Notes: generated from the sequence alone by a model not told the origin. 64,000 bases of DNA from Ruditapes philippinarum (GCF_026571515.1 NW_026852109.1:1-64000); one strand, 5' to 3'. Shown: positions 6,187 to 33,600, numbered from the stretch's first letter. Program-made: numbers and translations.

Positions 6187-6261
6187 GACAATGAAGCCAA
6201 GACGACGAAAACCTAAGGTAGATATGAAGTCTGCAGAAGAAAGGGAAATTTATAAGAATAG
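6187..6261 (+). CDS. Tentative first coding exon, MKPRRRKPKVDMKSAEERE (basic, NLS-like)
   Basis: ttttag acceptor, ATG at 6191, GT at 6262. The phase does not join directly to 6589, so a further exon or a lesion is needed. Confidence 0.35.
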
Positions 6262-6588
6262 GTTTATTGATATATTAATTTGTAATTATTTGTCTCACAA
6301 ATAATATATCCTTATAAGGAACACCATGTAGGATTAACGTGAAAAATGCCTGACGGTAAACAATTTTGCTATGTGGTCGTTTTAAATAATTTATATTGAT
6401 GTAATGAAATATTTTAAATTTGAGGAATTTGAAGCATTTTCATTGGCTATAATAGATGACTAAGATAAAATCAATGTAGAAATCAGGTAGTGATGTGAAG
6501 TTACATACTTAATTCTCACAAAACTGCAAATGGAGCATATCTAGCTACTGGAATTATTATGATAAAAGCTAAGCAAATTTTCTTGTAG

Positions 6589-6749
6589 GTCATGGTGTCA
6601 TTGCTGATGACATAATAGAACATAACCAACTTCTTTGCTATTATAATGGAGAGTTGATATCGAATAAGGAGGGGGAGAAGAGGATGAATGACAACAGTGA
6701 TAAAGGCAGTTTCCTGTTTTTTTTTCAACCATAATAAAGAAAAACTTTG
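6589..6749 (+). CDS. SET domain exon 1 (GHGVIADDIIEHNQLLCYYNGELISNKEGEKRM...GSFLFFFNHNKEKLC)
   Basis: tcttgtag acceptor, gtaag donor. GxGV and YxGELI motifs of SET8/KMT5A-like domains. One extra T in the T9 run at 6717-6725 shifts the frame. Confidence 0.85.
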
Positions 6750-7079
6750 GTAAGATATATTTAAAATCATCACCAAAGTCTTTAAAAAAAACATATATTT
6801 TCCCTATTTTAGTAATGATACAATTGTATCCATACAATATTTATTTTATGATAATAACCATGTTTTAAGTGTGAGTTATACTGGGTTCATTGTAGTGCTA
6901 GCACTGCTGGGTGTATATAATCTTAAGTCAGCACAGTGTGCCTAATATTATACTTGTACTTTCAGTTTGATATGTTTAAGACCTTTGATCTTTTTCCACT
7001 TGAAAGTATTACTGCATTAATTATTGAAGTGTTCTTCTTTAGATTTAATTCAAAATCATATTAATGAATGAATTTACAG

Positions 7080-7262
7080 ACTGCCACCATTGTCTAGTGT
7101 TAGAGTGTCTGACTTCTGGGTTTAAATCCCAGGAAAAGCATTTGATAGTTTGGCACAGAGGAAAGGTGTTCAGTACTGGTGTAACTCTCCAGGAACGATG
7201 GTTAGGAAACTACCCGTCTTTATAACTGAAATACTGCTGAAAAGGGGTAAAAAAAAGAAAAA
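7080..7262 (+). mobile_element. Degenerate tRNA-derived SINE
   Basis: A-box-like tgtctagtgttagag, B-box-like gggtttaaatccc, 3' ataactgaaatactgctgaaaag plus A-rich tail. Confidence 0.5.
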
Positions 7263-7589
7263 AGAAAATGGATGGTTCAAGAATTGGTAATTGTTGAAAT
7301 TTTGAAATAAAGCAATATAACTTTTTTTTTTTTGATCTTATGAGGCTTTTTTGCTAAAATGCAATTTTCCTTTACAGAAAAGCATCTTAAACCGAGGAAA
7401 CATGTTATAATACGAATTCTTTTGAATGATTATTTTGACTTTCAAAATTCTTGCATGAGGCTTTTAAATCATGACCAGTTGAAGCCAGGATTTCCATGTT
7501 TAAAGCCATATTGCAAATACTATCCTCTTTTTGTCAGGAATATTTGTTTGAAATATTTACTGAATTCTGTATCATCTTTTAACCAACAG

Positions 7590-7776
7590 TATTGATGGTA
7601 CTAAGTCATCAGGATGTGGTCGGATGATTAACGACGATCATCGTGAACCAAATTGTAAAGTCCAATTACAAGTGGTGGACGGAGTTCCAAAATTAGCCTT
7701 TACAGCCATCAAAAAAATTGAACCTGGAACAGAACTCCGGTTTAATTATGGAGACAAGTCTGTTCATTGGAGGAAG
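7590..7776 (+). CDS. SET domain exon 2 (IDGTKSSGCGRMINDDHREPNCKVQLQVVDGVPKLAFTAIKKIEPGTELRFNYGDKSVHWRK)
   Basis: caacag acceptor, gtaagc donor. CIDxT, GRxIN, PNC, IxxGxELxxxYG and terminal W motifs of the SET C-terminal half. Confidence 0.92.
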
Positions 7777-7822
7777 GTAAGCTTATAAATATATTTTATG
7801 ATTTATAGTGAATTTGTTTTAA

Positions 7823-8339
7823 AGGGGCAGACAACCAGTTTGTTTGTGATTTATCTATTAAGATGTAAATACCCATTGCTTTGATGGAACAAAAGATAAA
7901 CATACAAGATACTATATGTATGTTATATTAAGACTTAATTGATCATTGTTCCTTTACCTTGATAAATACTTATTTTTCACTCTCTGAGGGGTTGTCTTAC
8001 CTACAAATAGTAAACACATCTTGGAGTGAAATAATGAAAAAATGGTGTTTACTGATTTTCCTTGCATTTTGGTCAAATGGGACAAAAAAAAGATCCTAAT
8101 AAACATTATAAGCGTGTTCACTGTAAAAATGTTAAAAGGGATAAAACTGGCCAAAATATTTTGTTCTAATATAACCATTATTCACTATAAAGGTGTTAGC
8201 TATGTGTGAAGTTAACTGTAATTCTATTTATTATGATAAGGTTACAAAATAATTCAGGTATTTTTAGCATTTGCCTATTTTTTTCTTATTTTTTTTGCAA
8301 CCTCACTGGCTTTTGCTAACACGCTGGTTGCCAGCCCCA
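7823..8339. mobile_element. MITE with short TIRs, Kolobok-like
   Basis: ttaa|aggggcagacaaccag ... ctggttgccagcccc: imperfect ~15-bp TIRs, with TTAA on the left flank. Confidence 0.45.
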
Positions 8340-10049
8340 GTAATGCTGTGAAAACTTAAATGTCTTGTTTCGTGTGTAGATAAATATCTGTTAAATATAC
8401 ACCTCATGGTCAACAGTTTTTACCTTACAATATCATGTGGCATTGTCTAACCCCTGTAAGTCAATATATTGTCCATGAAGTTATGTAGCTTACACTGACA
8501 TAAATGGATTTAGATACCTAGAATTAGACTATGATACCCTAACTCTTTGCTAGTACTAGTAGACTTCCTAGCTCTTTAATATGCACCGTGTAAAGCCCTT
8601 ATGTGAAGATAGTTTAGGAAAATCTGTAAAGCAAATTTGACCCTGGGTTGAACCTTGCCTGCATTTTGCCTTTAAACCATCGGTCCATACCACAACAGCA
8701 CAAACAATCGTGAATGTTAACATTTAAAAGATATTACAGACTTAATGCTCCTAATGTAGACATAGAGTTAATGTTGAAAACCACAATAAGTAATACCTTT
8801 TTATCATGGTATAGAAAAATCTAGAAAGGCTGGTGCTTTATGATGAACCAGGTGAATATTTATGGGTGAAAATAGAAAATAAATGAAGCCTGAGTACAAG
8901 TGTTTGTAGTTTTAGTAAAAAAGGTAACAAACTTAAAAGTTGTGGCCATACTTTGATGTTAAATTTGTGTATTAAAACTTGTATGAACAACATTTCATCA
9001 AAGAGCCAAAGTCAAATGTAAGTTTTTATTATACTCTTTTACAGCTCTGCACAGTGATTTATTGTACCTGTTCAAAAAGATTTATCTGAGGATGTTTAAT
9101 AGGATTTTAATCATGTTTATGTGATTTGATTGCTCATTTCCACAGGCTTTTTGATACCCAGAGGTTTGAACGGGTCTTATAAGCAATATCCCAAACCCTA
9201 TTGAGATTTAATAATATCTGTAAATTGCAATTATAGATTTGTTTCCAGGTGATTTTTTTTTTGCTGCATAATTATTAGACCTTCACTGGGTAGAAATGGC
9301 TTGTGTCAAATTTCATATTACAATCAACAAGGGTCAAACATAACTGACTAATTGGCAACATATTGTTGATGTTTTCTATCAACTTCGTATGTATTGGTTA
9401 AGCATATTATGTATTGGTAAAGCATCTCAAAGATATTGCAAGAAACATATCATTTGAAAATTTGGATAATAAATATCGAATTGTAGTTGTTTCCTCACAA
9501 ATAACAGTAAATTGGCTCATCCGAGGTCAAAATTTTTAACATATCTAACATGGAAATTATTAAAAGGCTTCATTTTATTTTTATTTTCACCCAAATAAAA
9601 AGTGAAATTGCTTCATATGATACAATATTTATTTGGTTTGACCTTTTCAGTCTTCTCTGTTAAGAATTTATCTGTTTTGTTTAGTTAAATAACAGAGGAG
9701 GAAACTTTAATATCAGTTAAGCAGTCATTTTGAAAATCAAATAGAATAAAAGCTTTATCATTGATCTCAACAATGAAAATAATGTATATCTTGTTACTGC
9801 ATCTCAACACTTAACATGAAAAATATATACATATAAATGTAAAAGCAATTGATAAAGAATGAAAAAAACTCCTCTATTTTAAGTAGTTATTAGTCACAAC
9901 ATACTGTTTGATTGTTACAGTTGTTAATCAGTTGTTACAGTTGATTACCTATGTCTGGAATTATATGCATTTGCTACCTTGTTGGAAAACATGCATGCTA
10001 AAATGTCATTATTTTATACATTGTAATGAATTGTTGATATTCAAAATTA

Positions 10050-10428
10050 CATAGAGAATATTTGTTTAGTGCAGTGTAAAATGGGAATATATTTCACAAT
10101 GTGAGCATCAAAAGGTATATTTCAAGAGTGGCGCAGCACTAAATTAAACAAATTTTCTTATTATTATATGCAAAGAAACGTTTGAAAAAGACATTAAACC
10201 TAATACTGAATGAAAAGCCGCTAAATAATAATACAACGTGACGTCATTTTCGACATCACGTCATTAAGTTGGTTCCCAGTACTGTGCACGCTTGTATTTC
10301 AACGTAAGGGGCTTAAATTCAAAACAGTGAAATTACCAAATTGATAATTTCACTGTTTAAAACAGTGAAATTACCAGTTTTATATCACTGATATATTTCT
10401 ATAAACTACTGAAAGGCATGTAATAAAA
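10050..10428. mobile_element. Non-autonomous Crypton-like repeat (tentative)
   Basis: atttcaagagtggcgcagc core, internal acagtgaaattacca duplication, ends catgtaataaa. Resembles mollusc non-autonomous Crypton-type repeats from memory; not searched. Confidence 0.35.
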
Positions 10429-10764
10429 TATTTCAAACATTGTTTCATTGCAATTATTTATTGAAGGAGATTTTTTTAGTGTAAGAAAATATAACTCCAG
10501 TTTTAAAAATTATACTGACGTGATTTTTCTACAGCATATTGGAACTGATGCATTTATCATTTGAGCATCTGCCATGCTTGCTGGGCTAGTTACCTAATAA
10601 TCATAATTTTGATTAAAAAATTAGATTTTCTATGTACATGTGCTTTGCATTTAAATTTTAATGTATTCTAGTGAAAGCTCACTATTAATGTCATTACTAT
10701 AACAATTGAGTTGTTCTTTCCAAGTGACATAGTAAAGAGTTTTTAGTGATTTTGTTTGTTGTAG

Positions 10765-13700
10765 AGTTTCTTCATCAAACTGCAGCAGTTCAAGTAGTAT
10801 GGAGGAATGGAGAGCGCCAAAATTCCCTTTGAAAAACCACTACTGTTTAATTGGAAGGTAAGAATATTTATTTTTTTCAGTGTTTGCCCTGAAAGAAATT
10901 CACAAATGGTTCAATGAGCTTGTATTGTGTCTGTCTTAGATGTTTGAGTCAGGCTAATGAAACTTAATAGGAATGTAGAACACTATTATACATCATATCC
11001 TGCTTTGTGACAAGGGCTGGAAGTGAGAGCAATTGTGCCCTGTAAACATATTTCTAGTTTAGTTCAAATTGTTCAAACATTGTTGCACATGAGAGTTTTT
11101 CTGAGTGAAAGTATAGATATATCCTAACAAGATATACTTTAGGTATGTCAAATTATTCAAGGCATCTTGTAAGACACTGGCTTATAAATACAAGACTGAC
11201 TTGAAAGTTGCCTAAAAAAAAGCATCACTTAAAAGGTATTCTAAAACCAGGTGTGGTAAAACGATTAAGAATTAATTCTTGCAAGTAAATAAAAAAAATC
11301 ATAACATGGTGTTGGTAAGGAATCGAACCAGAGACCTTCAGATCGGTAGTCCAACATCTTTACCAATACACCACATCTCACTGACGATTGAAGTTAGCAA
11401 ATACAAAGATATATTCGATAGATACTGGTCAGTGTTTATTCAAATGACCTTCACGAAAGATAATGAAGAGCCAGGTCAATATTGTTGAACAATACATGAA
11501 TACTAACTATTTAACAAAGCAAAGCAGAATAATGGTGTGTGTTTTTAAACTAGGTGTATATGAACATGATTAATTGAATATTTGCAAATTTCTTATTGGT
11601 ATAAGATTTGTAGATTATTGCTGTTTTCTTTGCACAAATGCAATAAAACATATACTTAATGCTCGTGTCTTCTGATCCTCATACCTAGATGCATCTGGCA
11701 CTCCCTTGATTTCCTGTTTGAATTTATATTCGCAAACTTTGCAGTGACAATATTGTAGTGGGAGTGAGAGATGAGCTTGGTGTTTTGTGACCTAGATTTG
11801 TACTTAACCATTATTGAAAAAAATATATGTCATGGCAGGTTTAGAATGAACACACAGTTTTCATCTGTGGTTTTCTAATTCTAGTCTGTGTTCTTAGTTC
11901 CAGATCATGTGACATTATTGTCTCGAAGGCCGAAGTACTGCCAGTACAAATCCAGATAGAAGTGGCAAGAGGAGAAGTATGTAATAATTATTTTGTAATT
12001 TTATAGGCATATCTATGAATATGAGGATAAGGCCTACTGGTTTCCTAGCACTTTCCGTCCCTAGCAGTTTTCCGGCCGTTTATCATTTTTGTCCAGAACA
12101 GTCAATTTTTACCAGTAAGGCATCCACATTACTTCATCAATCAGAGAGAAATTTGTTCTCTATGCTAAACAGCATTTGAAATAGTACAACAATTTATATG
12201 TTTTGAAGTTTTGCCTCTTATTAAAAGTTACGTAAGAGAACTTGCGACTTTCAAAAGTAAGCAACACCTGGGGAATTTTAGCTTGAATATCCATGCACAA
12301 TAACTCAGACCCCATTTTAGGTAAATCAATACTTCGGAAAATATTTTTGCAGACGACACGGAAAAGGTTGGGAATCTCTGTTTGTCTGATAAAACCATTT
12401 TAACATTGCTTCTTGGTACTGAATTATATTGAAAATAAAACAGGTCCAGAAAAATGTTATGAATTTTTGAAAAAGGTGAGAAAAAGGGTGTTACATTCCA
12501 GGCCTATATTCAAATTAAAAAATAAAATGAAAGTGCAACATAAACACATGGCAATGCTGGACAGGTACCTAACTTTGTCCTGTCAAAGTTTTGTATCCCT
12601 CCGTAGACTGTTTTTTATTTCATTTGTTAAAAAGTGCGATTTGTGGCCGGAAACTGCTAGGAAACCAGTATGTTACTTATTTTTCTATAAAGAAAACTTT
12701 ATGAATACAAATAACTATACCTTGGACCTTTTGAGACAAAAGAAAATAGTAATGCATCCAACTCTCCATTTGGAGAAATCAAATGTATGTTGTCACCTTC
12801 AGCTGTCAACATAGAAATCACTATATAAGTATATTGTCCATTTGAATTTCTTATTGGCTGGGTTGCATAGGTGCAAACCGGAGTTAAAATATGGTGAATG
12901 TCAGGTGGCGGGCCGTGAAAAAATGTTCAAAACGGTTTTTTTTCTCAGCAGCTACTTATTACAGCTTCTCTTGTTATTTGTATACAGCATTAACACATGG
13001 TCCCATACAGTGGGATTCGATTTAAGATCTGTAACTCATCCACTTCCTGTTTACCGACTTAGTTAAATTTTTTGACATTGATGGTCAATGGTAGGAATTT
13101 TTTGTAACATTTTTCTAAGCAACTACTTATTCTTGATATTTGGTATAGAGCATTAACACATGGTCCTATACTGTTGAATTCGATTTTAGGTTTTTCGCTC
13201 ATACATTTCCTGGTTACAAACTTAGTTGAATTTTTGACATTAATAAGGGTCAATGGTTGGAAATTTTCGTAACAGTTTTCTCAGTAACTACTTAACATTT
13301 GGTATACAGCATTAACACATGGTCCCATACTTAGGGATTCAATATAAGGTCTGTCGCTTATTCAGTAACTGTTTACCGACTTAGTTAAATTTTTGACATT
13401 AATGGTCAATGGTAAGAAATTTTCACAGCCTCATGATATTTGGTATACAAATGCACCCCGACAATTTCTGTCTTTGACCTTTTTTTAAAAATAAAATCTT
13501 GTAACCCACCCTGGCATGAAATTAAATGTTCTGAGGAAACAAGCACCAGTTTAGAATGTATTAACAATTCACTATTCTAGGTGTTTCTAACAAACTATCA
13601 CAATTCCAACCAAGAGAAACGTCTACAATGTGGAGATGAGTTTTCCATATTTGACAGATCATTTAAGATAGTGTGTTATAACATAAATGTAAGTTGAAAT

Positions 13701-14134: not shown

Positions 14135-14319
14135 GTACGTCCTGTATGTTCTAAATAAGCGTTATTTTGGGCTGGTAAAATGAAGCAATCGCTAATTATT
14201 TAAAGTCTTGCAATTAACAACAATTGTGATTGTTCAATGCTTTAGTGTGACATACCAGTATTTTAATCCTGATACCCCCCTTATGATGATAAATGTTAAA
14301 AAAGTAGCTACCTTTACAA

Positions 14320-17300
14320 ATTTTGTCTCAGAAAATATATGCCTCTGCCCAGATTTGAGCTTGCTACATTCTTATCATCAGTCCTATAATCAACTGTGTC
14401 CACAACTGACATTCTTAATTCTTTGTGTGTCCTCAGTTGATAATGAGTGTGTCCTGATTTGAAGCTTTATTGTTCTCACCCTTGTGTATTTTCTATTTCA
14501 GAGGTTGATAGTGATTTTGTTCCTACCCAGAAGGAAAATTTGCAGTTTGGGGAAATAGGTGAGTAGTTCTAGAGAAGTATGTTACCTATGAAAAAAGAAG
14601 CCCTGATGTTGCCGAGTGTTAAACAATGGAGCTCCCTGTATAAATTATAAATGTATTGATATGACATGGCCAGGACTTGAACTTCAGACTGTATGCACTA
14701 ACTCACAGCTGACACTATGTCACTTAGCTGTATATGCTGTCCTCCATTAGAAGTGAGTATTGCTTCAATTGTGATTCAGAACATTTTTAGGGGTCCCTGT
14801 GGTTAAGTTTTTGCGTGCAAGCTGGTATCTCCATAACTACTGAAGGGAATGGATTGAAACTTCACACCTTGTTCTCTGTGATTATCTAATATGATTTGCT
14901 TAAATCCCATAACTTTGATTTGCATTTTTGCATAATTTTGCCCCTTTTTCGACTTAGAAATTCTTGGTTAAGATTTTGCGTGCAAGCTGGTATCTCCATA
15001 ACTACTGAAGGGAATGGATTGAAACTTCACACACTTGTTTTCTGTAATTATCTTATATGATTGACACAAGTCCAGTAACTCTGATTTGCTTTTTTACATA
15101 ATTATGCCCCTTTTTCGACTTAGAAATTCTTGGTTAAGTTTTTGCTTGCAAGCTGGTATCTTCATAACTACTGAAGGGAATGGCTTGAAACTTCACACTC
15201 TTGTTTTCTGTGATTATCTTACATGATTGGCACAAGTCCCATAACTCTGATTTGCATTTTTGCATAATTATGCCCCTTTTCTGACTTTGAATTTTTTGAT
15301 TAAGCAAACATCTCCATAACTACTGAAGGGTTTGTGCCTTTTTTTAACAATTTTATGCATTTTATAATAATAAAGCAGTGATTAACTCGATAAAGCATCT
15401 TAAATACAAGCCTTTGTACCTTTTTGGACAATTTTATGTTTTCATATAGGTAAGCATTATTATACTCAATGAAACACACTTGAGACAACTTTTCAAATAG
15501 TCAAACGTTACTGTTTTCCGACGTTCTTGTTTATTTGTTTGAATTTAGTTTCCCCCAATTTATAGTGGGTGTGTCCTCAGTTCGAGTTAACTATGCCAAG
15601 TTTTTACACATTTGGATTGATAATGCTGTTTTCCCAACTGGAAATGTGTGTTGTTTTCAATTTTAAGTTCTATTTGGGGAAGGCTATTTTCTTAAGCCAT
15701 TTCCTTGGTTTTTTTAGGCTCTAAGCAGAACAAAGCTTGATCATCTACTGGCTGCTGCTTAAATACTCAACTTGATTGCCACTTTTTGGTTGAGGACAAA
15801 TTTTGTCTCAGGGAATATATGCTTCTTTCCAGATTTGAACTAAGTTCATTCAAATCTTTAGTCCCATAATCAACTGTGTCCACAATAGACATTCATGATG
15901 CTGGGTGTGTCCTCAGTTGATAATGAGTGTGTCCTCATTTTGAACCTTTAATTAATGTTCTCATCCTTGTGTATTTTCTATTTCAGAGGTTGATAGTGAT
16001 TTTGTTCCTACCCAGAAGGAAAATTTGCAGTTTGAGGAAATAGGTGAGTAGTTCTAGAGAATTATGTTACCTATGAAAAAAGAAGCCCTGATGTTGCTGA
16101 GTGTTAAACACAGGAGCTCCCTGTATAAATTATAAATGTATTGATATGACATGGCCAGGACTTGAACTTAAGACTGTCTGCACTAACTCACAGCTGACAC
16201 TTTGTCACTTAGCTGTATAGGCTGTCCTCCATTAGAGGGGACTATTTCCTCCTCAATTGTGATTCAGTATGTTTTTGATTAGTTGAAATTAGGATGATTT
16301 AGTTTCCCCCAATTTATAGTGGGTGTGTCCTCAGTTGGAGTTGATTATGAAAAGTTTTTACACATTTGGATTTGATAAAATGCTGTTTCCCCACCTGGAA
16401 ATGTGTGTTGCCTCAATTTTCAGTTGTATTTGGGGAAGGCTATTTTCTTAAGCCATTTCCTTGGGTTTTTTTTGGCTCTAAGCAGAACAAACCTTCACCA
16501 TCTACTGGCTGCTGCCTAGCTACTCTACTTGATTCATTTCTTGGTGGAGGACCAATTTTGTCTCAGGGAATATATTCCTTTGCCCAGATGATTTGAGCTT
16601 GCTACATTATTGTCATCAGTTCCATAATCAACTGTGTCCACAATAGACATTCATTATGCTGAATGTGTCCTAAGTTGATAATGAGTGTGTCCTCATTTTG
16701 AACCTTTATTTCACTCACCCATGTGTTTTTTCTATTTCAGAAGTTGCTAGTGATTTTGTTCCTACCCAGAAGGAAAATTTGCAGTTTGAGGAAATAGGTG
16801 AGTAGTTCTAGAGAATTATGTTACCTATGAAAAAAGAAGCCCTGATGTTGCTGAGTGTTAAACAATGGAGCTCCCTGTATAAATTATAAATGTATTGATA
16901 TGACATGGCCAGGACTTGAACTTAAGACTGTCTGCACTCACTCACAGCTGACACTTTGTCACTTAGCTGTATAGGCTGTCCTCAATTAGAAGTGAGTATT
17001 TCCTCCTCATTTGTGATTCTGTATGTTTTTGATTAGTTGAAATTAGGATGATTTAGTTTCCCCCAAATTATAGTGGGTGTGTCCTCAGTTGGAGTTGATT
17101 ATGCCAAGTTTTTACACATTTGAATTGGTAAAATGTTGTTTTCCCCAACTGGAAATGTGTGTTGCCTCAATTTTCAGTTGTATTTGGGGAAGGCTATTTT
17201 CTTAAGCCATTTTCTTGGTTTATTTAGGCTCTAAGCAGAACAAAACTTGATCATCTACTGCTTGCTGCCTTGCTACTCTACTTGATTCATTTCTTGGTGG

Positions 17301-20300
17301 AGGACAAATTTTGTCTCAAGGAATATATTCCTCTGCCCAGATTTGAGCTTGCTACATTCTTCTCATCAGTCCTATAATCAATTGTGTCCACAATTGACAT
17401 TCATTATGCTGGGTGTGTCCTCATTTTGAACCTTTAATTAATGTTTCTCACCCTTGTGTATTTTCTATTTCAGAGGTTGAAAGTGATTTTGTTCCTACCC
17501 AGAAGGAAAATGTGCAGTTTGGGGAAATAGGTGAGTAGTTCTAGAGAAGTATGTTACCTATGAAAAAAGAAGCCCTGATGTTGCTGAGTGTTAAACAATG
17601 GAGCTCCCTGTATGAATTATAAATGTATTGATATGACATGGCCAGGACTTGAACTTAAGACTGTCTGCACTCACTCACAGCTGACACTTTGTCACTTAGC
17701 TGTATAGGCTGTCCTCAATTAGAAGTGAGTATTTCCTCCTCATTTGTGATTCTGTATGTTTTTGATTAGTTTAAATAAGGATGATTTAGTTTCCCCGAAT
17801 TTTATAGTGGGTGTGTCCTCAGTTGGAGTTGATTATGCCAAGTTTTTACACATTTGGATTGGTAAAATGCTGTTTCCACCCCTGGAAATGTGTGTTGCCT
17901 CAATTTTCAGTTGTATTTGGGGAAGGTTATTTTCTTAAGCCATTTTCTTGGTTGATTTAGGCTCTAAGCAGAACAAAACTTGATCATCTACTGCTTGCTG
18001 CCTTGCTACTCTACTTGATTCATTTCTTGGTGGAGGACAAATTTTGTCTCAGGGAATATATTCCTCTGCCCAGATTTGAGCTTGCTACATTCTTGTCATC
18101 AGTCCTATAATCAATTGTGTCCACAATTGACATTCATTATGCTGGGTGTGTCCTCATTTTGAACCTTTAATTAATGTTTCTCACCCTTGTGTATTTTCTA
18201 TTTCAGAGGTTGATAGTGATTTTGTTCCTACCCAGAAGGAAAATTTGCAGTTTGGGGAAATAGGTGAGTAGTTCTAGAGAAGTATGTTACCTATGAAAAA
18301 AGAAGCCCTGATGTTGCTGAGTGTTAAACACAGGAGCTCCCTGTATAAATTATAAATGTATTGATATGACATGGCCAGGACTTGAACTTCAGACTGTCTG
18401 CACTCACTCACAGCTGACACTTTGTCACTTAGCTGTATAGGCTGTCCTCAATTAGAAGTGAGTATTTCCTCCTCATTTGTGATTCTGTATGTTTTTGATT
18501 AGTTTAAATTAGGATGATTTAGTTTCCCCGAATTTTATAGTGGATGTGTCCTCAGTAAGAGTTGATTATTCCAGTACTTCTACACATTTGGATTGATAAT
18601 GCTTTTTCTCCAACTTGAAATGTGTGTTGTCTTCAATTTTAAGTTCTATTTGGGAAAGGCTATTTTCTTAAGCCATTTCCTTGGTTTTTTAGGCTCTAAG
18701 CAGACCAAACCTTGATCATCAACTGGCTGCTGCCTAGCTTCTCCACTTGATTGTCATTTTTTGGTTGAGGACAAATTTTGTCTCAAAGAATATATGCTTC
18801 TTTCCAGATTTGAACTTAGTTCATTCAAATCTTTAGTCCCATAATCAACTGTGTCCACAATAGACATTCATGATGCTGGGTGTGTCCTCAGTTGATAATG
18901 AGTGTGTCCTCATTTTGAACCTTTAATTAATGTTCTCATCCTTGTGTATTTTCTATTTCAGAGGTTGATAGTGATTTTGTTCCTATCCAGAAGGAAAATT
19001 TGCAGTTTGAGGAAATAGGTGAGTAGTTCTAGAGAAGTATGTTACCTATGAAAAAAGAAGCCCTGATGTTGCTGAGTGTTAAACACAGGAGCTCCCTGTA
19101 TAAATTATAAATGTATTGATATGACATGGCCAGGACTTGAACTTCAGACTGTATGCACTCACTCACAGCTGACACTTTGTCACTTAGCTGTATAGGCTGT
19201 CCTCAATTAGAGGGGAGTATTTCCTCCTCAGTTGTGATTCAGTATGTTTTTGATTAGTTGAAATTAGGATGATTTAGTTTCCCCAAAATTATAGTGGGTG
19301 TGTCCTCAGTTCGAGTTGATTATGCCAAGTTTTTACACATTCGGATTGGTAAATTGCTGTTTCCCAAACTGGAAATGTGTGTTGCCTCAATTTTCAGTTG
19401 TATTTGGGGAAGGCTATTTTCTTAAGCCATTTCCTTGGTTTATTTAGGCTCTAAGCAGAACAAAACTTGATCATCTACTGGCTGCTGCCTAGCTACTCTA
19501 CTTGATTGCCATTTCTTGGTGAAGGACAGATTTTGTCTCAGGGAATATATTTCTCTGCCCAAATTTGAGCTTGCTGCATTCTTGTCATCAGTCCCATAAT
19601 CAATTGTGTCCACAATAGACATTCATTATGCTGAATGTGTCCTAAGTTGATAATGAGTGTGTCCTCATTTTGAACCTTTATTTCACTCACCCTTGTGTAT
19701 TTTCTATTTCAGAGGTTGATAGTGATTTTGTTCCTACCCAGAAGGAAAATTTGCAGTTTGAGGAAATAGGTAAGTAGTTCTAGAGAATTATGTTACCTAT
19801 GAAAAAAGAAGCCCTGATGTTGCTGAGTGTTAAACAATGGAGCTCCCTGTATAAATTATAAATGTATTGATATGACATGGCCAGGAGTTGAACTTCAGAC
19901 TGTATGCACTATTCTCGTTTTTCTACACATTTGGATTGATAATGCTGTTTCCCAAACTGGAAATGTGTATTGTCTTCAATTTTCAGTTGTATTTGGGGAA
20001 GGCTATTTTCTTAAGCCATTTCCTTGGTTTTTTAGGCTCTAAGCAGAACAAACCTTGATCATCTACTGGCTGCTGCCTAGCTACTCCACTTGATTGCCAC
20101 TTTTTGGTTGAGGACAAATTTTGTCTCAAAGAATACATGCTTCTTTCCAGATTTGAACTAAGTTCATTCAAATCTTTAGTCCCATAATCAACTGTGTCCA
20201 CAATAGACATTCATGATGCTGGGTGTGTCCTCAGTTGATAATGAGTGTGTCCTCATTTTGAACCTTTAATTAATGTTCTCATCCTTGTGTATTTTCTATT

Positions 20301-21860
20301 TCAGAGGTTGATAGTGATTTTGTTCCTACCCAGAAGGAAAATTTGCAGTTTGAGGAAATAGGTGAGTAGTTCTAGAGAAGTATGTTACCTATGAAATTGG
20401 AAGCCCTGATTTTGCTGAGTGTTAAACACAGGAGCTCCCTGTATAAATTATAAATGTATTGATATGACATGGCCAGGACTTGAACTTCAGACTGTATGCA
20501 CTAACTCACAGCTGACACTATGTCACTTAGCTGTATAGGCTATCCTCCATTAGAGGGGAGTATTTCCTCCTCAATTGTGATTCAGTATGTTTTTGATTAG
20601 TTGAAATTAGGATGATTTAGTTGCCCCCAATTTATAGTGGGTGTGTCCTCAGTTCGAGTTGATTATGCCAAGTTTTTACACATTTGGATTGGTAAATTGC
20701 TGTTTTCCCCAACTGGAAATGTGTGTTGACTCAATCTTCAGTGTATTTGGGGAAGGCTATTTTCTTAAGCCATTTCCTTGGTTTATTTAGGCTCTAAGCA
20801 GAACAAAACTTGATCATCTACTGGCTGCTGCCTAGCTACTCTACTTGATTCATTTCTTGGTGAAGTACAAATTTTGTCTCAGGGCATATATTTCTCCCAG
20901 ATTTGAGCTTGCTACATTCTTGTCATCAGTCCCATTATCAATTGTGTCCACAATAGACATTCATTATGCTGAATTTGTCCTCAGTTGATAATTAGTGTGT
21001 CCTCATTTTGAACCTTTATTTCACTCACCCTTGTGTATTTTCTATTTCAGAGGTTGATAGTGATTTTGTTCCTACCCAGAAGGAAAATTTGCAGTTTGAG
21101 GAAATAGGTGAGTAGTTCTAGAGAAGTATGTTACCTATGAAATTGGAAGCCCTGATTTTGCTGAGTGTTAAACACAGGAGCTCTCTGTATAAATTATAAA
21201 TGTATTGATATGACATGGCCAGGACTTGAACTTCAGACTGTATGCACTAACTCACAGCTGACACTATGTCACTTAGCTGTATAGGCTGTCCTCCATTAGA
21301 GGGGAGTATTTCCTCCTCAATTGTGATTCAGTATGTTTTTGATTAGTTGAAATTAGGATGATTTAGTTTCCCCCAATTTATAGTGGGTGTGTCCTCAGTT
21401 GGAGTTGATTATGCCAAGTTTTTACACATTTGGATTTGATAAAATGCTGTTTCCCCACCTGGAAATGTGTGTTGCCTCAATTTTCAGTTGTATTTGGGGA
21501 AGGCTATTTTCTTAAGCCATTTCCTTGGTTTTTTTTTTTTTGGCTCTAAGCAGAACAAACCTTGATCATCTACTGGCTGCTGTTTAGCTACTCCACTTGA
21601 TTGACATTTCTTGGTGGAGGTCAAATTTTGTCTCAAAGAATATATGCCTCTGTCTAGATTTGAACTTAGTACATTGACATTCATTATGTTGAGTGTGTCC
21701 TCAGTTGATAATGAGTGTGTCCTCATTTTGAACCTTTATTTCACTCACCCTTGTGTATTTTCTATTTCAGAGGTTGATAGTGATTTTGTTCCTACCCAGA
21801 AGGAAAATTTGCAGTTTGAGGAAATAGGTAAGTAGTTCTAGAGAAATATATGTTACCTAT
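14320..21860 (+). repeat. Tandem array of ~720-755-bp exon+intron units (~10 units)
   Basis: Near-identical units. Exon-to-exon spacings are 1485 (HINE-like insertion), 754, 733, 733, 755, 751, 592 and 746, 720. Confidence 0.95.
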
Positions 21861-22312
21861 GGAAAAAGTAGCTGCATGTCTTGTAAATCACATATAAATT
21901 GCACAAGATAGCTGAGGCGATACAAAGGATTAAGAGAAAAATTTGAAAAAGTTAATGCGAGTACTTACTTTTTAAAAGCATTTTGTTAGAACTTTGCTTT
22001 TTCTTTACGGCTTAAGTTTGCAGTTGAAGAAGAAAGCAAATCACACACAGAATGTGATCATTATGTTTGTAGGGCTAAACAAGAATACAGTCAGGATACA
22101 TACATAGTGTTAAGTAATGTTCTCAGCCCAAATTTGGGATCCATCAACCTTGCCTACAATTGACATTCATTATGCTGGGTTTGTCCTCAGTTGTAAATGT
22201 GTGTGTCCTCATTATGATTAAATAATGTAACACCATTGTATATTTTCTATTTCAGAGGTTGACAGTGATTGTTTTTCTACTCAAAAGGAAAATTTGGTCT
22301 CCCAGGAAATAG
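14502..22312 (+). CDS. Eleven copies of a 57-nt phase-1/1 exon encoding EVDSDFVPTQKENLQF(G/E)EI
   Basis: Starts at 14502, 15987, 16741, 17474, 18207, 18962, 19713, 20305, 21051, 21771 and 22256 (diverged: EVDSDCFSTQKENLVSQEI). Each has a tttctatttcag acceptor, a gtgagt/gtaagt/gttagt donor and no stop. Confidence 0.85.
14785..15340 (+). mobile_element. HINE-like ~165-bp tandem repeat inserted in the first array unit
   Basis: gcaagctggtatctccataactactgaagggaatgg at ~14813, 14978, 15143, partial at 15305. Confidence 0.7.
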
Positions 22313-22691
22313 GTTAGTAGGCGAAAAGCCAAACATTGATAAAAAGTGGCTGCAGTTCTTGTTATGCTATGGGTTTTTAAAGTTCTGTATGTAATTTGCT
22401 CTGGACAGCTGAGCTGGTGTGTAAGATTAAGCAACTATAATTCAAAGAAAGAAATTTCTCACAATACAAATACATGTACTTTTTTTAGCATTGTATAAGA
22501 CTTTGGGTTCTTCCATATTGCATATGTGCTTAATTGCTGAGAGGGAAAACATCAGCTTGTAATTGTAATGTTTAAAGAGATAAACAAGAAAACATTGTGA
22601 CAGCATGCATTGTTTTTAGTAAAGTCCTCTCCCCAGATTCAAACTCACTACCTTCCGATCATCAGTCCCATGCTTTATTATCCTGTGTGCC

Positions 22692-23353: not shown

Positions 23354-23402
23354 TTATCATTGTGTTAGATTTCGGAGTCTTCCTTATTGTTGATGTTTTC
23401 AG

Positions 23403-24703: not shown

Positions 24704-24753
<50 letters not shown>

Positions 24754-26410: not shown

Positions 26411-26837
26411 GTAAATGTTTGTTTCACTGCATCTACTATGTCTTGTCGAGTGACTCATTTTTATAGAAAAGCATATAATAATCAGGAAATGCAAGCTTAA
26501 AACAGTAATAAGTGCTGAAAACTGTTGATTCTTGAAACACGGGCTTGATCAAAGAGTGCTCAAACAATACTTCATGAAGCATGGATCCATGAAGGAATCA
26601 AGAGATGTTATCTACATTAAGATAAACTTCTCTTTGCCTTTCATGGATGGATTATTTAATATCATACTAAAAATGAAGATATGTTAGATGTAATATCCAT
26701 GTCAAAAGATCAGGGTCATACTCAATGTTTCTTTGTCTCTGTTCCAGAAAACAAGCATTTGTTGTTTATAAATTCTTGATTGGGTCTTGGTTTTACAGTT
26801 TAAGTACACTATCAATTTAAACACATTTCACATTGCC

Positions 26838-27957
26838 TTTTTATATGCCCGAAAAATTTTCGGGCATATTATGTTCTACCCCCTGGTGTCCGTCTGTCTG
26901 TCCGTCCGTAGGCAATTTGGTTTCCGGAGCATAACTTAAGTTCCATTTGGCCCACAATATTCAAACTTCATAGGATGATTGTCCATATTGGGTAAAAGAC
27001 TCCTATTGATTTTGGGGTCACAAGGTCAAAGGTCAAGGTCGCTATGACCTTAAAACTGAAAACAGTTTCCGGAGCATAACTAATGTCCCGTTTGGCCCAC
27101 AGTGTTCAAACTTCATAGGATTATTGTCCATATTTGGTAGAAGATCCCTATTGATTTTGGGGTCACAAGGTCAAAGGTCAAGGTCACTATGACCTTAAAA
27201 CTGAAAACAGTTTCTGGAGTATATCTTGAGTCCCATTTGGTCCACAGTGTTCAAACTTCATAGGATGATTGTCCATATTGGGTAGAAGACCCCTATTAAT
27301 TTTGAGGTCAAAGGTCAAGGTCACTATTACTTTGAAATTGAAAACAGTTTCTTGAGCATAACTTAAGTTCCGTTTAGTCTACAATATTCAAACTTCATAG
27401 GATGATTGTCCATATTGGGTAGAAAACCCCTATTGATCTTGGGGTCACAAGGTCAAAGGTCCAGATCACTATAACCTAAAAACTGAAAAACAGTTTTCGG
27501 AACATAATTTAAGTTTAATTTGGCCCACTGTGTTCAAACTTCATAGGCTGAGTGTCCATAATGGTTAGAAGACCCCTATTGATTTTGGGGTCACAAGGTC
27601 AAAGGTCAAGGTCACTATTTCTTTAAAACTGAAACAGTTTCCGGGGCAAAACTTAAGTTCCATTTGGCCCACAATATTCAAACTTCATAGGATGATTGTC
27701 CATAAAAGGTAGAAGACTCCTATTGATTTTAGGGTCACAAGGTCAAAGGTTAAGGTCACTATTACCTTAAAACTGAAAACAGTTTCCGGGGCATAGCTTA
27801 AATTCCATTTGGACCACAATATCCAAAACTTCATTGCAGGATTGTTATTTGAAGGAGGTAATACTTTATTTAATTCCAATGTCTTACAAATGCTTCATCT
27901 TTACTAGAAAAAAATCACTTTCAGGCATATAATGCTCCACCTAGCGGTGCTCTTGTT
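26838..27957 (+). mobile_element. HINE/pearl-type element with about seven ~145-bp tandem units
   Basis: 5' palindrome atatgcccgaaaaattttcgggcatat, (GTCC/GTCT)n, repeated aaacttcatagga and ggtcaaaggtcaagg units, 3' hairpin. Confidence 0.85.
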
Positions 27958-28348
27958 TGTTACTTTTAAGTACTCTTATTATATATCACTAATAATGCTT
28001 TGTTCTTACTAGTTTAAAAAATGAACACGTCAGGTCGATTAAATTGAGCTATTGTCTCTATTCTTCTGAAAGAAAAGACTATTGACCTCTGAAATATATA
28101 CTGTTAACCGTTTATCTAGTGAAATCCAAATTGTTACAGATAAGTCAATAGTCTAAACTTGCACTTTACACATATGCACTTTTATGTTATGCCCACAAGC
28201 TACATGCAAACATTTTGTCAACAAAACTTAAACAAACGCTTACATAATAAGATAACATCAATCAGTTCAAATTTTGTTCTCTGTATTTTTCTACATTTGA
28301 TTTTATATAATATGACAAAACATCTATCTACTTCTTAAGAATAATAAG

Positions 28349-28474
28349 GATAAGAATTATTCAGCCTCGAAATATGATTATTGAACCTCTCAGTCAACTA
28401 TTGATGGCGACTTTGTCGTGACAATAGTTACCTGGCTCAGGTCAGTAGTCATATTCCTTGGCTGAGCAGTTCTA
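28349..28474. repeat. Short imperfect palindromic element
   Basis: aagaattattcagcctcgaaatatgattattgaacct ... aggtcagtagtcatattccttggctgagcagttct arms. Confidence 0.5.
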
Positions 28475-28569
28475 ACCATTGGGATCTCTAGTAGTGGGCA
28501 GTTATATAGTATTTCATATTGTATATCTTAATTTTTTTATTTTCTGATGAAGGTTTATTTCATTTACAG

Positions 28570-30409
28570 GTTCCTGTGTTCATAAAGAGTGGATTTTTCA
28601 GTGTATCACTGATGGTATGATTCTCCCAACAGACTTTTTCTATTTAAACAAAGAGGATAACTATGTGAGTGGAAGTGACACAGAATCATCGGTAGTCACA
28701 TTTAAAGAACTAACTGATAAACCTCAAATCACCGTTCAAAGGGTTAAGTCCAAATCTGGTAAATTTGTAGCGAAAAAGCTGTGTTGTGTGTACTGTGAAA
28801 ACTTGACTTCAAAACTATACCGCCATCTTGAAAACAAACATGGCAATGAAATTGATGTCGCTCGTGCTTTAAGTTATCCTTGCAAGTCCAACGAAAGAAG
28901 AAAAGCATGGGCAGCACTTGCTGCGCGAGGCATGGCTGTCCATAATGAAAAAGTGAAAATGAAAGGCTCTGGCATTATTATTCCCAAATATAGACCAAGG
29001 AAATCAAAGCAAAAGCAGGAATATTTGCCATGTGAATTCTGTAGAGCAGAATTTATATCAACGGTACTGTGGAAACATCACAAAGCCTGCCCTCTGGAAC
29101 CAGACTTTATGAAAAGTGATGCTCCTGTCAAAAACTCGCGCCTGCTTCTTCCCGTGACAGTGCAATGTTCAAATGAATTTAAAAGCAACATACTTAAAAA
29201 CATGAGAGATGACATAATTACATGCAAGGTCAAGGGTGATCCTCTCATCATTCAGTTTGGGGAGAGAAAATTTGAAAAAATCGGAAAACATCATCATACT
29301 CACCAATACATATCTGAAAATATGAGGTCATTTGGAAGGCTCATGATTGCAGTAGCAGAAACAGACATCCATGTTACAAAACTTCAGCAGTGTTTGATAT
29401 CTAGAAACTGGGAGCTCCTGTTAAAGGCAGTAAAAAAAGTAGCTGAGTATGACATATCAACTTCAACTTTCAGAAAACCAACTCTTGCTCAAAAGCTTGG
29501 CCATTATATTAAGAAATGTGCAAAAATAGTTCTCATAAATGCCAGAAAAAATGAGGACAGTGAAATGAAAGAAAGAATACAGGACTTCTTAGAAACATAC
29601 CAAGCAGACTGGACTGAAAGAATTGGCTGCAAAGCCTACGAGTCTAAATCGGAGGCGAAATATAACAAGGTGCAAATGATACCGTTAGCGGAAGATGTGA
29701 AGAAATTAACAGAATACATTTCAGAAGAAATACAAATGACGGCATTATCAAGAGAAGATGACAATTTTAAACACAACAAGTTAGCTCAACTCTGCTTAGC
29801 ACAAGTGATTCTTTACAATCGAAAACGGGCAGGTGAAGTGCAAAGACTGAAGACAAACACCTACAGAGAAAGCTTCTGTTGCAGATGCTCCAGTTGATGA
29901 AGATGTAAAACGATGCATGTCAAAATTTGAACAATTTCTGTGTAGAAACCATAGTAGAATAGAAACACGAGGGAAGAAGGGTAGGAAAGTTGCCATTCTG
30001 CTTACTAAGACCATGAAAGCCAACATTGACCAGTTGATTTCTCTAAAGAATGAAGAAACAGAATACCTCTTTCAACTACCAGGAGCTAAGTTTCCATTAC
30101 GTGGGGCAGATGTTCTCAGAAGATTTACCTCAGAAGCTGCTTTAAAACATCCAAAGTCAGTTACATCCACTTCTTTGAGAAAACAACTTGCCACCATGTC
30201 ACAAGTTTTGAACTTAGACAACAACGATCAGGACATTCTAGCCAGGTTCACGGGTCATGATCTAAATGTTCATAGGGATTTTGATAGACTTCCTCAAAGC
30301 ACCTTGGAAGTTGCTAAGGTATCCAAAGTTCTTCATGCGCTCAATATTGGGTCACTGGATTCTATTAAAGGAAAGAATTTTGATGATATTGATGCTGAAG
30401 GAGATCTGG
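28570..30409 (+). CDS. Large exon: Zn-finger motifs plus tyrosine recombinase (Crypton-like/phage-integrase fold), frameshift at ~29865
   Basis: Joins ORFs 28617-29897 and 29917-30498. CxxC...H...H (CVYC..LYRHLENKH) and CxxC...H...C (CEFC..WKHHKAC). YR motifs: R in YNRKRAGEV, K in RGKKGR, R in TSLRKQLAT, H in GHD, and the expected Y position in VHRDF[D]RLP. Acceptor tttacag at 28569, donor gtaatt at 30410. Confidence 0.88.
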
Positions 30410-30612
30410 GTAATTTGCTATTGTATTTTATATTATCTGAATTAAGAATTTATATCATTAGCTTACACCCTCATGTAATCCAAAGATTCAAATTATAGAA
30501 TTATAACAATGAATGAATTATATATAAATTAAATAACATATTTATCAGTGTTTGACTAAATTTAATCAACATACCCCTATTGAAATAATGGGCTATAAGT
30601 TCTTGGTGCAAG

Positions 30613-31152
30613 TTTTTGTGCCCCCTCTCTAAAGAAGGGGGTATATATATTTGCCCTTGTCTGTATGTCTGTCAGTCAGCACAACTGAAATCGTATAGGG
30701 GGCCATCTAAGTGTAAACAAAACAACAGGAAAAAACAGTTCATTCCGTAACAAAAAAGTAAGGGGCCATGGCCCTCTTTTAAAAAAATAACAAAAGAAAT
30801 TGTTCTGATTTTGCTGGGTGTCCGTTTTCTCCTCCATCCAAATAATCTTGTCAATCATCTTGTGTTGCATGTCTTTCAAAAATGATTTGAACCAGAGTTA
30901 TGAAACTTCATATGAATGTTAATCATCTTGTGATGTATTGCACCTTGTGTTATTTTTGTCACATAATTATTGCCCTTGAGAGTGTTTATTGAGTATGTAA
31001 TCTCGAAAACAATATTGAAACTTCATATGAATGTTAAGCTTGATTTGTAGAGCACCAACTTTGTTAGGATTGCATTATATGACTACTGTACTAAGCTCTT
31101 TTGACAATGGCCAGAAGAGGGGGTGCCTGTGTCCTTTGAACACATTTCTTGT
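30613..31152 (+). mobile_element. Degenerate HINE, family of 1939-2723
   Basis: tttttgtgccccc start, gcccttgtctgt microsatellite, ggggtgcctgtgtcctttgaacacatttcttgt end. Confidence 0.65.
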
Positions 31153-31178
31153 CTCACTTATATTACTTGGCAAGATCA

Positions 31179-31449
31179 GGGCCGTCCGTGGCCGAGTGGT
31201 TAAGGTCGTTGACTTCAAACCACTTGCCCCTCATCGCTGTGGGTTTGAATCCAGACAGGGATTCTTTCATGAGAGGAAGCTATCCAGCTAGCTTACTGAA
31301 CGTCAGTGGTTCTACTCAGGTGCCCGTTTGTGCCTGAAATAATGCACGGAAGGGCACCTGAGGTCTTCCTCCACCAGTAAAGCTGGAACGTCGCGATATG
31401 ACATATACTGTGTTGATGTGACGTAAAACCCAAACAAACAAACAAACAA
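31179..31449 (+). mobile_element. tRNA-derived SINE with (CAAA)n tail and target-site duplication
   Basis: A box tggccgagtggt, B box gggtttgaatcc, tail caaacaaacaaa, flanking cttggc(a/c)agatca on both sides. Confidence 0.9.
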
Positions 31450-32266
31450 GCTTGGCCAGATCAAAGTTTTCAACAATGGCTTGCAAATATGACAATGTTA
31501 TTTTAAGTAGTCAGTTTTTTAGATATATTATAGTGATTTGGACACAATTTAAACAATTTTTGATAAAGCATTCAACAATGCATTTTTTAAATCCATTTCT
31601 TTACATATTCCATTTGTAATTGATATGTGCAAGAAAAATAATCAGCCACTGGTAACGATGCAAATGTGAATGCAGAGCTTCGGGCTGGAAATTCCTGTCT
31701 GCACCAGTTACTAATGTAAAATTTTTATCTCTCAAACAAACAGGCTAAACTATCCACTAGCCTGACAGTTAATTTTAGTATGTTAAAATATTTAACCTGT
31801 CCAGTATGATTTTAGCTTGTCAGACACTCCCAGGCATTTGCTTATATCAAACAATGTTTTATTTTGCTTAGTAGTTCCCATTTTGTTTATTTAGATACAT
31901 TATTGTCGCTTATTGACTGTTGGAAAACTCCTAAATATAAATAATTTGTGAATTTATTTTCATGTACTTTCAAAAAGTCTGATTCTTCATCTTCATAAGG
32001 AAGAGTAACTTGGAAAAAAGAATAGGATTGAATCTTATGATTGTTTTGCAAGACTATTTTGATAAAAGCAAAAAATGTTTTTGGTTTTAAATTGCGTTGT
32101 ATTTTATTTGAATTTGGATGGAAGATATCATATTGTTTAATAACAAATATGAATACCTTAATACATGATCACAGAATTCCACTTGCAAAAAAAAAACCCC
32201 AGATGCTATACTTCAAGAAATAAATGATCATCTTGTACTTGAGATTGCAAATTTTCTTTCATGCAG

Positions 32267-32413
32267 AGTATGAACCAGCAAGTGATGAAGACGATGACAA
32301 TATTGTGGAGCCTACTGATGGTGTGGTGGAGAATGATAACAGTGACAGGGAAGACGTTTTTTCAGAATACTCTGATGATTCGGAGGCTGATGCTTCATGC
32401 AAGAAACCTATAG
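32267..32413 (+). CDS. Acidic exon (EYEPASDEDDDNIVEPTDG...SEADASCKKPI)
   Basis: atgcag acceptor, gtaaca donor, 147 nt, phase 1-1. Confidence 0.8.
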   Translation, partial: SMNQQVMKTMTILWSLLMVWWRMITVTGKTFFQNTLMIRRLMLHARNL

Positions 32414-33373
32414 GTAACAACTTATTTAACGATAAAATACTGAAAAGAAGCAACATATGACTGGACTAAGCTTGACTGCCATTATCTTAATGCCAAAAGA
32501 AGATAAAATGAAACACTTATTGTTGAGTCATTGGCATTGATTGATAAAAATATACACAAATTAAAGCTCTATGTATCTTTTTTTTAGCTATTAAAGCCTA
32601 GGAATGTGTTTGTGGTAGAAGAATTACACAAAGTAAAATATGTTAGCTAAAGATAATCAAACAAATGAAAATGAAGAAAACATTGTATTTCACCTATAAA
32701 TTCGCCAAATTTTTGGGGAATACCCAGGCATTCCCATAACGGTTACTAACCAGCAGGAAGGATAATTTTGCAAAATTACATGAAGCATGGAAAAGAACCA
32801 GACAATGAACAGGGCTTGTGAGTAAAGGAAGCATTTCAAAAACTAAATATTTTGTCATTTTTGTTCGGAGGTAAAGCCCTTTCGATAGAACAATTTTTAC
32901 AAATACGTTCAGAGGCTTTAAAGATATACTACTCTCAAATTTGATTTTTGAAAATACTAATAATTGCTACACAGTCTCTTTGTATTTATAAAATAAGCAT
33001 GTTTCGACTTCATTTAAAGTAGATATGTTATGTTTTGAACTCTACACACTATAGGTGGTCACAATATGAATATATAATGTCATTAAAAAACTTGCAGTTT
33101 TTTTAAGAAAAGACCAACTTTACTTGACCTGTAATATGGAATGCAGTTTCCCATACATAGTTTGTTCATTATTTTATTCAAATTAAATTCAGTAAGAATT
33201 TCATGGATTTCAATACATTTTTAAGATAAAAATATTTTACTCAAAGATGAGCATAGTATATCTTTAAAGTTTCAATGAGATGGTACTTAGTATTCATTAC
33301 TATTATTTATCAATATAAATTGTTTGGTTTAGACCATGCTATTTTCATATGTCAAAATTATTATATACTTCAG

Positions 33374-33600
33374 GAAAGAGGAGAAAAATATCACAGAAAA
33401 CACCTTGGTCCAAAGAGGAGCAGGACATTGTTTTTAGTGAATTTAAGAAGTGTTTCACACTAAATGTTCTCCCAAAGAAGCTGGAATGTGAGCAGCTAAT
33501 AAAAAAGCACCCAGTTCTTACAAGAAGGACTTGGACTATGGTCAAAGGATTTGTACGAACAAGGCAACTTGCTATGAAGAGACAAAAATCATGCAATTGA
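33374..33600 (+). CDS. Terminal exon, Myb/SANT-like helix-turn-helix (KTPWSKEEQDIV...PKKLECEQLIKKHPVLTRRTWTMVKGFVR)
   Basis: PWSxEE and RxWxxVK Myb-like signature, TGA at 33598-33600, AATAAA immediately after. Confidence 0.8.

Follow-up and report, generated by a model that had tools for sequence, protein, structure and literature searches.

The stretch of DNA analysed here, called the window, is 64,000 nucleotides (nt) long (GCF_026571515.1, NW_026852109.1:1-64000) and comes from the clam Ruditapes philippinarum. Between positions 6191 and 33600 it carries exons for a SET domain, linkers, short repeats, a predicted tandem BRCT domain, two zinc fingers joined to a tyrosine recombinase, an acidic stretch and a C-terminal tail, all of which lie on the plus strand. 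With a probability of roughly 60%, these co-oriented exons form one intron-rich locus, which belongs to a very large family found in metazoans, and this family is likely to be a Crypton-like mobile element or a recent derivative of one. An initial annotation, made from the sequence of the window alone, had listed the same parts in the same orientation and every one of them was found. The exons were searched singly and their reading frames were worked out by arithmetic.

In the recombinase exon, the motifs YNRKRAGEV, RGKKGR, TSLRKQ and GHD all fall within 28551-30495, where two open frames (28551-29894 and 29851-30495) jointly align with intact open reading frames (ORFs) of paralogs that are 600-840 amino acids (aa) long. 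The corresponding motifs of the family are LFNRKRSGE, RGKxGRKV, TSTSLRKQLAT and GHDIRIHRxFYRLP, giving a catalytic consensus of R (in NRKRSGE), K (in RGKxGRKV), S/T-x-L-R replacing HxxR, GH, and the Y of FYRLP. The window copy reads FDRLP, with an Asp (30283-30285) at the place of the nucleophile Tyr, and has a frameshift near 29866-29877 that is outside any long homopolymer, hence it does not have the full set of catalytic residues (R, K, HxxR, H/W, Y) of a tyrosine recombinase. An integrase catalytic fold had been expected of this exon, and it was recovered on the model of a paralog, L002, whose recombinase part (418 aa) was modelled by AlphaFold with a predicted local distance difference test score (pLDDT) of 78. 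Foldseek placed XerH first for this model (E-value 5e-4, probability 1.0), followed by XerA, Cre, the Tn1549 integrase, lambda integrase and topoisomerase IB, with nearly all of the PDB matches listed being tyrosine recombinases or type IB topoisomerases. The modelling thus confirms the predicted two-domain tyrosine recombinase fold, with a core-binding and a catalytic domain. Using sequence profiles, Pfam Phage_integrase (PF00589) had no match at E<=1 in the window ORFs or in the proteins P0001, P0002, P0005 and P0007, and was found below its cut-off of 27.1 bits in the members P0191 (24.7 bits) and P0022 (20.2 bits). A single-exon Pfam search of the recombinase returned nothing, and a profile of the recombinase part gave weak zinc-finger matches only against the sequences of PDB.

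At the 5' end of the locus is the SET module. The open frame of its second exon (7564-7785) scores 40.6 bits against a Pfam SET cut-off of 22.4, and its nearest solved relative is KMT5A/SET8 (5teg), with which it shares the same domain end (HWRK in the clam, HPWLKH in KMT5A). It is unlike KMT5A in the cofactor motif, which reads NDDH instead of NHS, an oddity that fish relatives share as NDEH, and in the alignment the clam copy has a Phe at the first Tyr of the KMT5A YDYGD stretch. Judged by the Pfam cut-off and the nearest structure, the module is KMT5A-like and a putative methyltransferase. The fate of its reading frame can be followed by comparison with a near-identical paralog on contig C2039. 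SET exon 1 of the window has nine T where C2039 has eight, in a run near 6709-6717, which leads to a stop at 6732, and the SET reading frame is broken in the window whilst it is intact in C2039. The frame leaves exon 2 in phase 0 and, in both the window and C2039, reaches a TAG at 10795-10797, 10 codons into linker exon A, which in the window lacks one base of the C2039 exon; the end of exon B is in phase 1. With an acceptor 2 nt downstream (AG at 10765-10766, with an in-frame start at 10767), exons A and B of the C2039 version would be read without a stop. It had been supposed that a small exon was still to be located between the SET exons and the linker, but there is none, as 7776 joins 10765 directly in RNA contigs. 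Just 5' of the SET start codon are nine tandem units of 55 nt (96% alike, window 5087-5587), and the C2039 copy has this array too.

The linker exons are followed by a satellite that has one 57-nt exon in each of its units. These exons have AG and GT borders, start and end in the phase of exon B and, because of their length, leave the reading phase unchanged. An exact-pattern scan finds eight copies in the window, where 11 had previously been counted, and C2039 has about two units of the same satellite.

The predicted BRCT exons come next, and their alignment with the protein P0002 is continued by the recombinase exon from CVHKEW onward. The NCBI model of P0002 splices BRCT2 to the recombinase exon at the position predicted for the window, with which the position of the acceptor at 28570 agrees, and the locus L003 is identical to this Ruditapes philippinarum protein from the exon border onward. 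Residues 95-285 of P0002, as modelled in the ESM Atlas, superpose on the tandem BRCT domains of BRCA1, BARD1 and MCPH1 (microcephalin) with template-modelling (TM) scores of 0.68-0.73, with Pfam BRCT_2 being sub-threshold on the same protein (E 0.0018). The window BRCT exons, taken singly, had no match in Pfam, and no DNA-level copy of them was found elsewhere in the genome. Searched for homologs, the BRCT region of P0002 matched only itself, and BLASTP among the BRCT regions of clam, oyster and crinoid gave no significant alignment. The BRCT block lies between arrays of a 145-nt repeat at 22694-23356 and 26840-27960 (the latter also given as 26920-27845), with copies 85-94% alike; these were considered as element-specific sites and rejected, the repeat being a genome-wide satellite (4181 first-look candidates).

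Beyond the recombinase, an acidic exon leads to the tail, of which 33379-33585 aligns with the C-termini of other family proteins. The model of the tail is a three-helix bundle with two conserved Trp residues, for which Foldseek ranks homeodomains best and SANT/Myb domains lower, at TM scores of 0.55-0.65 and weak E-values of 0.5-3. Pfam has neither a Myb/SANT nor any other match to the tail. The tail, which the initial annotation proposed as Myb-like, is described here as homeodomain/Myb-like. The parts of the locus are collected in Table 1.

Table 1. Exons and repeats that make up the SET-BRCT-recombinase locus, in window coordinates
Feature	Position	Strand	Evidence
First coding exon of the SET ORF	6191..6264	+	Translation and donor site; ATG at 6191, basic N-terminus
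SET exon 1	6589..6749	+	N-terminal half of Pfam SET, E 0.038; joint 6749/7590 in 3 runs
SET exon 2, KMT5A-like, ends in phase 0	7590..7776	+	Pfam SET, E 3.8e-10; PDB KMT5A (5teg), E 6.6e-8; RNA joints on both sides
Linker exon A	10765..10857	+	Joints 7776/10765 and 10857/11898; sequence; comparison with C2039
Linker exon B	11898..11978	+	Joint 10857/11898 in 3 runs; sequence
Satellite with 57-nt exons, unit about 735-755 nt	14320..22312	+	Exact-pattern scan; blastn periodicity; comparison with C2039
Predicted tandem BRCT exons	23703-23768, 25079-25177, 25724-25807, 26314 to about 26410 (or 26433)	+	Collinear tblastn of all four, in order, to P0002 residues 112-261
End of BRCT2, two zinc fingers and tyrosine recombinase, single exon	28570..30409	+	Open frames; paralog alignment; paralog fold
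Acidic exon, 3' limit approximate	32267..32457	+	Phase fits the donor at 30409; C2039 equivalent is an RNA splice acceptor
Three-helix homeodomain/Myb-like tail and stop codon, 5' limit approximate	33349..33600	+	Fish, oyster and paralog tail alignment; AlphaFold pLDDT 86

RNA was mapped over 6191-12190 using three contig runs, from three studies, and one raw poly(A) run. The joints 6749/7590, 7776/10765 and 10857/11898, all GT..AG, are present in all three contig runs with the introns being without depth, and in run X5 a contig piece covering 6191-6272 is linked to the SET exons, whilst the raw poly(A) run X20 has no depth on the SET exons. The junction of 7776 to 10765, which the initial annotation had named as a check, was thus recovered, and the transcripts that carry it are those of the near-identical paralog. 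Every variant letter in the contigs equals C2039 (6701, the T absent near 6717, 7629, 7641, 7738, an extra G behind 10813, and 10815), so the source of the joint-bearing RNA is C2039, not the window copy. In one X5 contig the 7776 donor is followed by a 30-mer that is unique in the genome (C2039:14514-14543) and marks the acceptor of the acidic exon that follows the C2039 recombinase ORF. As this splices the SET donor to an acceptor behind the recombinase, SET and the recombinase are within one transcription unit in C2039. Two intron stretches of the SET gene (6991-7390 and 9991-10590) are a case apart, with an RNA word depth in the thousands in all four runs and loose ends fixed at 7172 and 10300; these are probably fragments of highly expressed repeats.

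The window copy itself has a mixed ancestry. It is collinear with C2039 from 4586 to about 22300, with many indels, the exons being 97.9% identical and the rest 95.0% (p 6e-4), and over the SET half, of which there is a third copy on C9230, the identity to C2039 is 95-98%. This homology stops at the satellite. The recombinase that follows downstream in C2039 has no BRCT and shares only 39% identity with that of the window. The BRCT-recombinase half of the window has no DNA-level relative in the genome, and its best paralog is 44-49% identical in amino acids. The window copy is a chimera, in which a recent duplicate of the C2039 SET and linker part has been joined, inside or just after the satellite, to a unique BRCT-recombinase-tail half. 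Two frameshifts had been reckoned with in this copy, but there are at least four defects, namely the extra T of SET exon 1, the missing base of exon A, the frameshift near 29866-29877 and the Asp at the nucleophile. Because of these four defects and the lack of any RNA that can be assigned to it, the window copy is most likely a duplicate in the course of decay, and it matters only as a pointer to the family.

That family is large and the arrangement seen in the window recurs within it. The Ruditapes philippinarum genome has at least 93 recombinase matches with 24-49% identity to the window copy. A SET exon is found upstream of the recombinase and on the same strand on 12 contigs (at 9.5-33 kb on 11 of them and at 67 kb on one), the tail is found downstream on at least seven contigs, and the order SET, recombinase, tail recurs at no fewer than 12 loci. 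Between SET and recombinase there is a BRCT exon of the oyster type on C4715 and C7776, and one of the BRCT-end type on C6820, the order at these three loci being SET, BRCT, recombinase, tail. SET-linked loci are present in both deep halves of the recombinase tree. In the databases, a full phmmer scan returned 6377 cluster representatives at E<=1e-3. SET and recombinase are joined in single-ORF models of Misgurnus, Alosa, Brienomyrus, Syngnathoides and Anguilla, and partially in the clam Tegillarca, BRCT and recombinase in models of Magallana gigas and the crinoid Anneissia, and PHD and recombinase in a model of the pearl oyster Pinctada. Misgurnus P0064 has, in one ORF, SET, serine-rich repeats, zinc fingers, recombinase, acidic stretch and tail, which is the order of the window minus the BRCT pair. 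At least eight clusters of SET proteins of the family are present in the protein atlas, in one of which a fifth of the members have FHA. Some clusters of the family have >100 near-identical members, and many copies are stop-riddled or fragmentary. The SET-BRCT-recombinase-Myb fusion that had been put forward for the window is therefore upheld as a recurrent co-oriented architecture, with continuous SET-recombinase-tail models in fish, but not as an intact gene of the window, whose copy is broken and for which the RNA is that of C2039 only. It had also been thought undescribed. The literature search found no paper on the family and none that connects a eukaryotic tyrosine recombinase to SET or BRCT; the Repbase group CryptonV, a possible match, is named there and not described. 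The fusion is not unique, being carried by many unnamed proteins in the databases.

Amongst known elements the animal Cryptons (CryptonA/CryptonI) are the obvious comparison. Like them the family has a eukaryotic tyrosine recombinase with the same order of catalytic boxes and no reverse transcriptase nearby, a low to moderate copy number and no terminal repeats seen. It is unlike them in its two N-terminal zinc fingers and C-terminal helix-turn-helix tail, animal Cryptons having been described without a C-terminal domain (Kojima & Jurka 2011, PMC3212892), and in having long spliced units as well as SET, BRCT or PHD modules. Animal Cryptons match the DUF3504 profile at E<=8e-12 (PMC3212892), whereas DUF3504 (PF12012) had no match at E<=1 in the window ORFs or in P0001, P0002, P0005 and P0007. 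The genome does have at least 149 true DUF3504 loci, all of them elsewhere than the family loci, and hhalign of the family against these true clam Cryptons gives an E-value of 0.1, in a register that aligns R, xSLR and GH. The family is therefore placed outside CryptonA/DUF3504. The domesticated DUF3504 genes (ZMYM2-4, QRICH1, KCTD1, KIAA1958) are alike in combining a recombinase-derived domain with chromatin-related modules in a host-like, intron-rich gene. They are unlike the family in that most of their catalytic tetrad has been lost (PMC3212892), whilst it is kept in most family members, the window copy being without the Tyr. A different comparison is offered by a fusion that arose from another class of enzyme. 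SETMAR of primates, in which a SET domain is fused with a mariner transposase, arose when an existing SET gene captured a DDE transposase, once and recently, and it likewise combines a SET methyltransferase with a transposition enzyme in a single transcription unit. The family differs in having a tyrosine recombinase, a KMT5A-like SET and a multicopy pairing that is common to fish and bivalves.

As the active-site residues of the recombinase are kept, the likeliest reading is that the family is a Crypton-like mobile element or a set of genes that arose from one recently. Its core is the single exon with two zinc fingers and the tyrosine recombinase, followed by the acidic exon and the homeodomain/Myb-like tail, and upstream in the same unit are the KMT5A-like SET module, the repeat-linker exons and, in some lineages, the predicted tandem BRCT. 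The zinc fingers and the tail would bind DNA that the recombinase would cut and rejoin, with the SET module (of the type acting on lysine 20 of histone H4, H4K20) and the BRCT, PHD or FHA modules possibly tethering the recombinase to particular chromatin states, or marking them. The chromatin modules might also serve in the choice of targets or in resistance to silencing, as the initial annotation suggested. The choice of splice site may set whether SET is made alone or fused to the recombinase. The SET frame ends just after the SET domain in the main clam transcript, therefore SET and recombinase may be separate products of one unit; alternatively, the two may be fused in a minor isoform alone, by way of the acceptor that lies 2 nt downstream. 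Mobile DNA that chooses its landing sites is known most clearly from recombinases and integrases with chromatin-reading domains, for example the chromodomain integrases, and here a tyrosine recombinase is linked repeatedly, from fish to clams and in thousands of database proteins, to a putative H4K20-type methyltransferase, and in some lineages to readers of phosphopeptides or histones. If the enzyme is active the family would offer a natural system for site-specific recombination directed by the state of chromatin, and a new class for the annotation of repeats in mollusc and fish genomes, and if it is domesticated it would be a large unknown family of chromatin factors. A more far-reaching proposal is that this is an undescribed animal superfamily of spliced tyrosine-recombinase mobile elements that have their own SET writer and BRCT, PHD or FHA readers, switch their products by splicing and have moved horizontally between bivalves; this is tentative and doubtful as a whole, with the lead towards horizontal transfer coming from the 88% identity of a clam copy (on C7555) to a protein of Mya arenaria.

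A number of points weigh against the single-locus, mobile-element interpretation. No transcript could be assigned to the window copy, all contigs over 6191-12190 being of the C2039 type at every variant, and in the recovered transcripts the SET frame ends 10 codons past the joint of SET and linker, so that one SET-BRCT-recombinase polypeptide is not supported in the clam. None of the contigs over the same stretch uses the in-frame acceptor at 10767, and the isoform that leads from SET to the acidic exon skips the recombinase and enters the acidic exon outside its usual frame. The chain from 11978 to 28570 is drawn from sequence and is outside the part covered by RNA, and the exon alignments behind the BRCT call in the window are short, are to a paralog, and have E-values of 6e-4 to 1.8. 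The extra T, being within a run of nine, may have arisen in the assembly. Neither element ends nor target-site marks were found, nor any near-identical full copies, and at the DNA level the SET half has three copies, which share no 5' limit. A shared 5' terminus was rejected, as homology to C2039 begins at window 4586 and that to C9230 at or before 4311. The interpretation given in the initial annotation is supported in part.

The alternative that survives best, although it is thought doubtful, is that of a host multigene family with an anciently domesticated and immobile recombinase, whose members are chromatin or DNA-repair factors and of which the window copy is a pseudogenised duplicate. 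An intron-rich structure and deep paralogy fit a host gene family too. The loci are intron-rich and 25-45 kb long, no termini are detectable, paralogs are only 24-54% alike and yet many have intact ORFs of 600-840 aa, and some intact ORFs, such as L012, are without the nucleophile. Further, the exons are more conserved than the introns between the window and C2039 (97.9% against 95.0%), and strong constraint could be what is reflected in the paralog that is 88% identical to the Mya arenaria protein. The catalytic motifs are however kept in most copies, whereas DUF3504 genes lost most of the tetrad (PMC3212892), and the family consists of thousands of clusters, some with >100 near-identical members, in which many copies are stop-riddled or fragments and the N-terminal modules (SET, BRCT, PHD, FHA) vary. 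Taken together, these features of the sequences point to an element that is, or recently was, mobile.

It is rather unlikely that there are two separate neighbouring genes, a short SET8-like gene ending in exon A and an independent BRCT-recombinase-tail gene, in which case the fish fusions would be read-through models and the splice links noise. Such an arrangement would account for the in-frame TAG that is found 10 codons after 7776/10765 in both copies, for the NCBI models of the clam paralog P0002 and of Mya P0178, which begin without SET, and for the C2039 recombinase exon having its own ATG directly after the acceptor. It would not account for SET having been kept upstream and co-oriented at 12 loci, nor for SET exon 2 being spliced onward rather than being terminal, with a contig that joins its donor exactly to the acceptor of the exon beyond the recombinase, nor for the continuous ORFs in fish models of at least five species, which have the same SET subtype (NDEH/NDDH). 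Chance juxtaposition in the window only, with a duplicated SET fragment having landed upstream of an unrelated BRCT-recombinase gene, is highly improbable, for whilst the two halves do have very different histories (95-98% to C2039 for the SET half, 44-49% in amino acids to the best paralog for the other) and the C2039 homology does end at the satellite, the diverged loci C4715, C7776 and C6820 keep the same order with BRCT between SET and recombinase, and exon B, the 57-nt exons and the exons after them are compatible in phase.

Several further copies and repeats were observed alongside the locus. The recombinase ORF of L008 (C7555:44364-46061) is the copy with 88% identity to Mya arenaria LOC128240867 isoform X2, measured over 587 aa, in contrast to the 24-54% between paralogs within the genome; it could be the result of horizontal transfer between distant bivalves or of very strong constraint. 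L012 (C12259:108626-110056) has an intact ORF of 723 aa without the FYRLP nucleophile motif, and a short segment of its zinc-finger linker is duplicated internally, hence it may be a catalytically dead copy that has been maintained. Three fragments of the C2039-type recombinase (C5674:211690-212193, C1610:18094-18543 and C14412:98479-98889; 84-89% identical in amino acids) all end at query residue 426, hinting at a common breakpoint or a short derived element. Elsewhere in the window there are 164 N at 43695-43858, from an assembly gap or masking. A unit of about 365 nt at 3350-3715 has copies of 97-98% identity in many tandem arrays elsewhere (for example on C13446 and C4945), and has the look of either a satellite of recent origin or an array internal to a mobile element.

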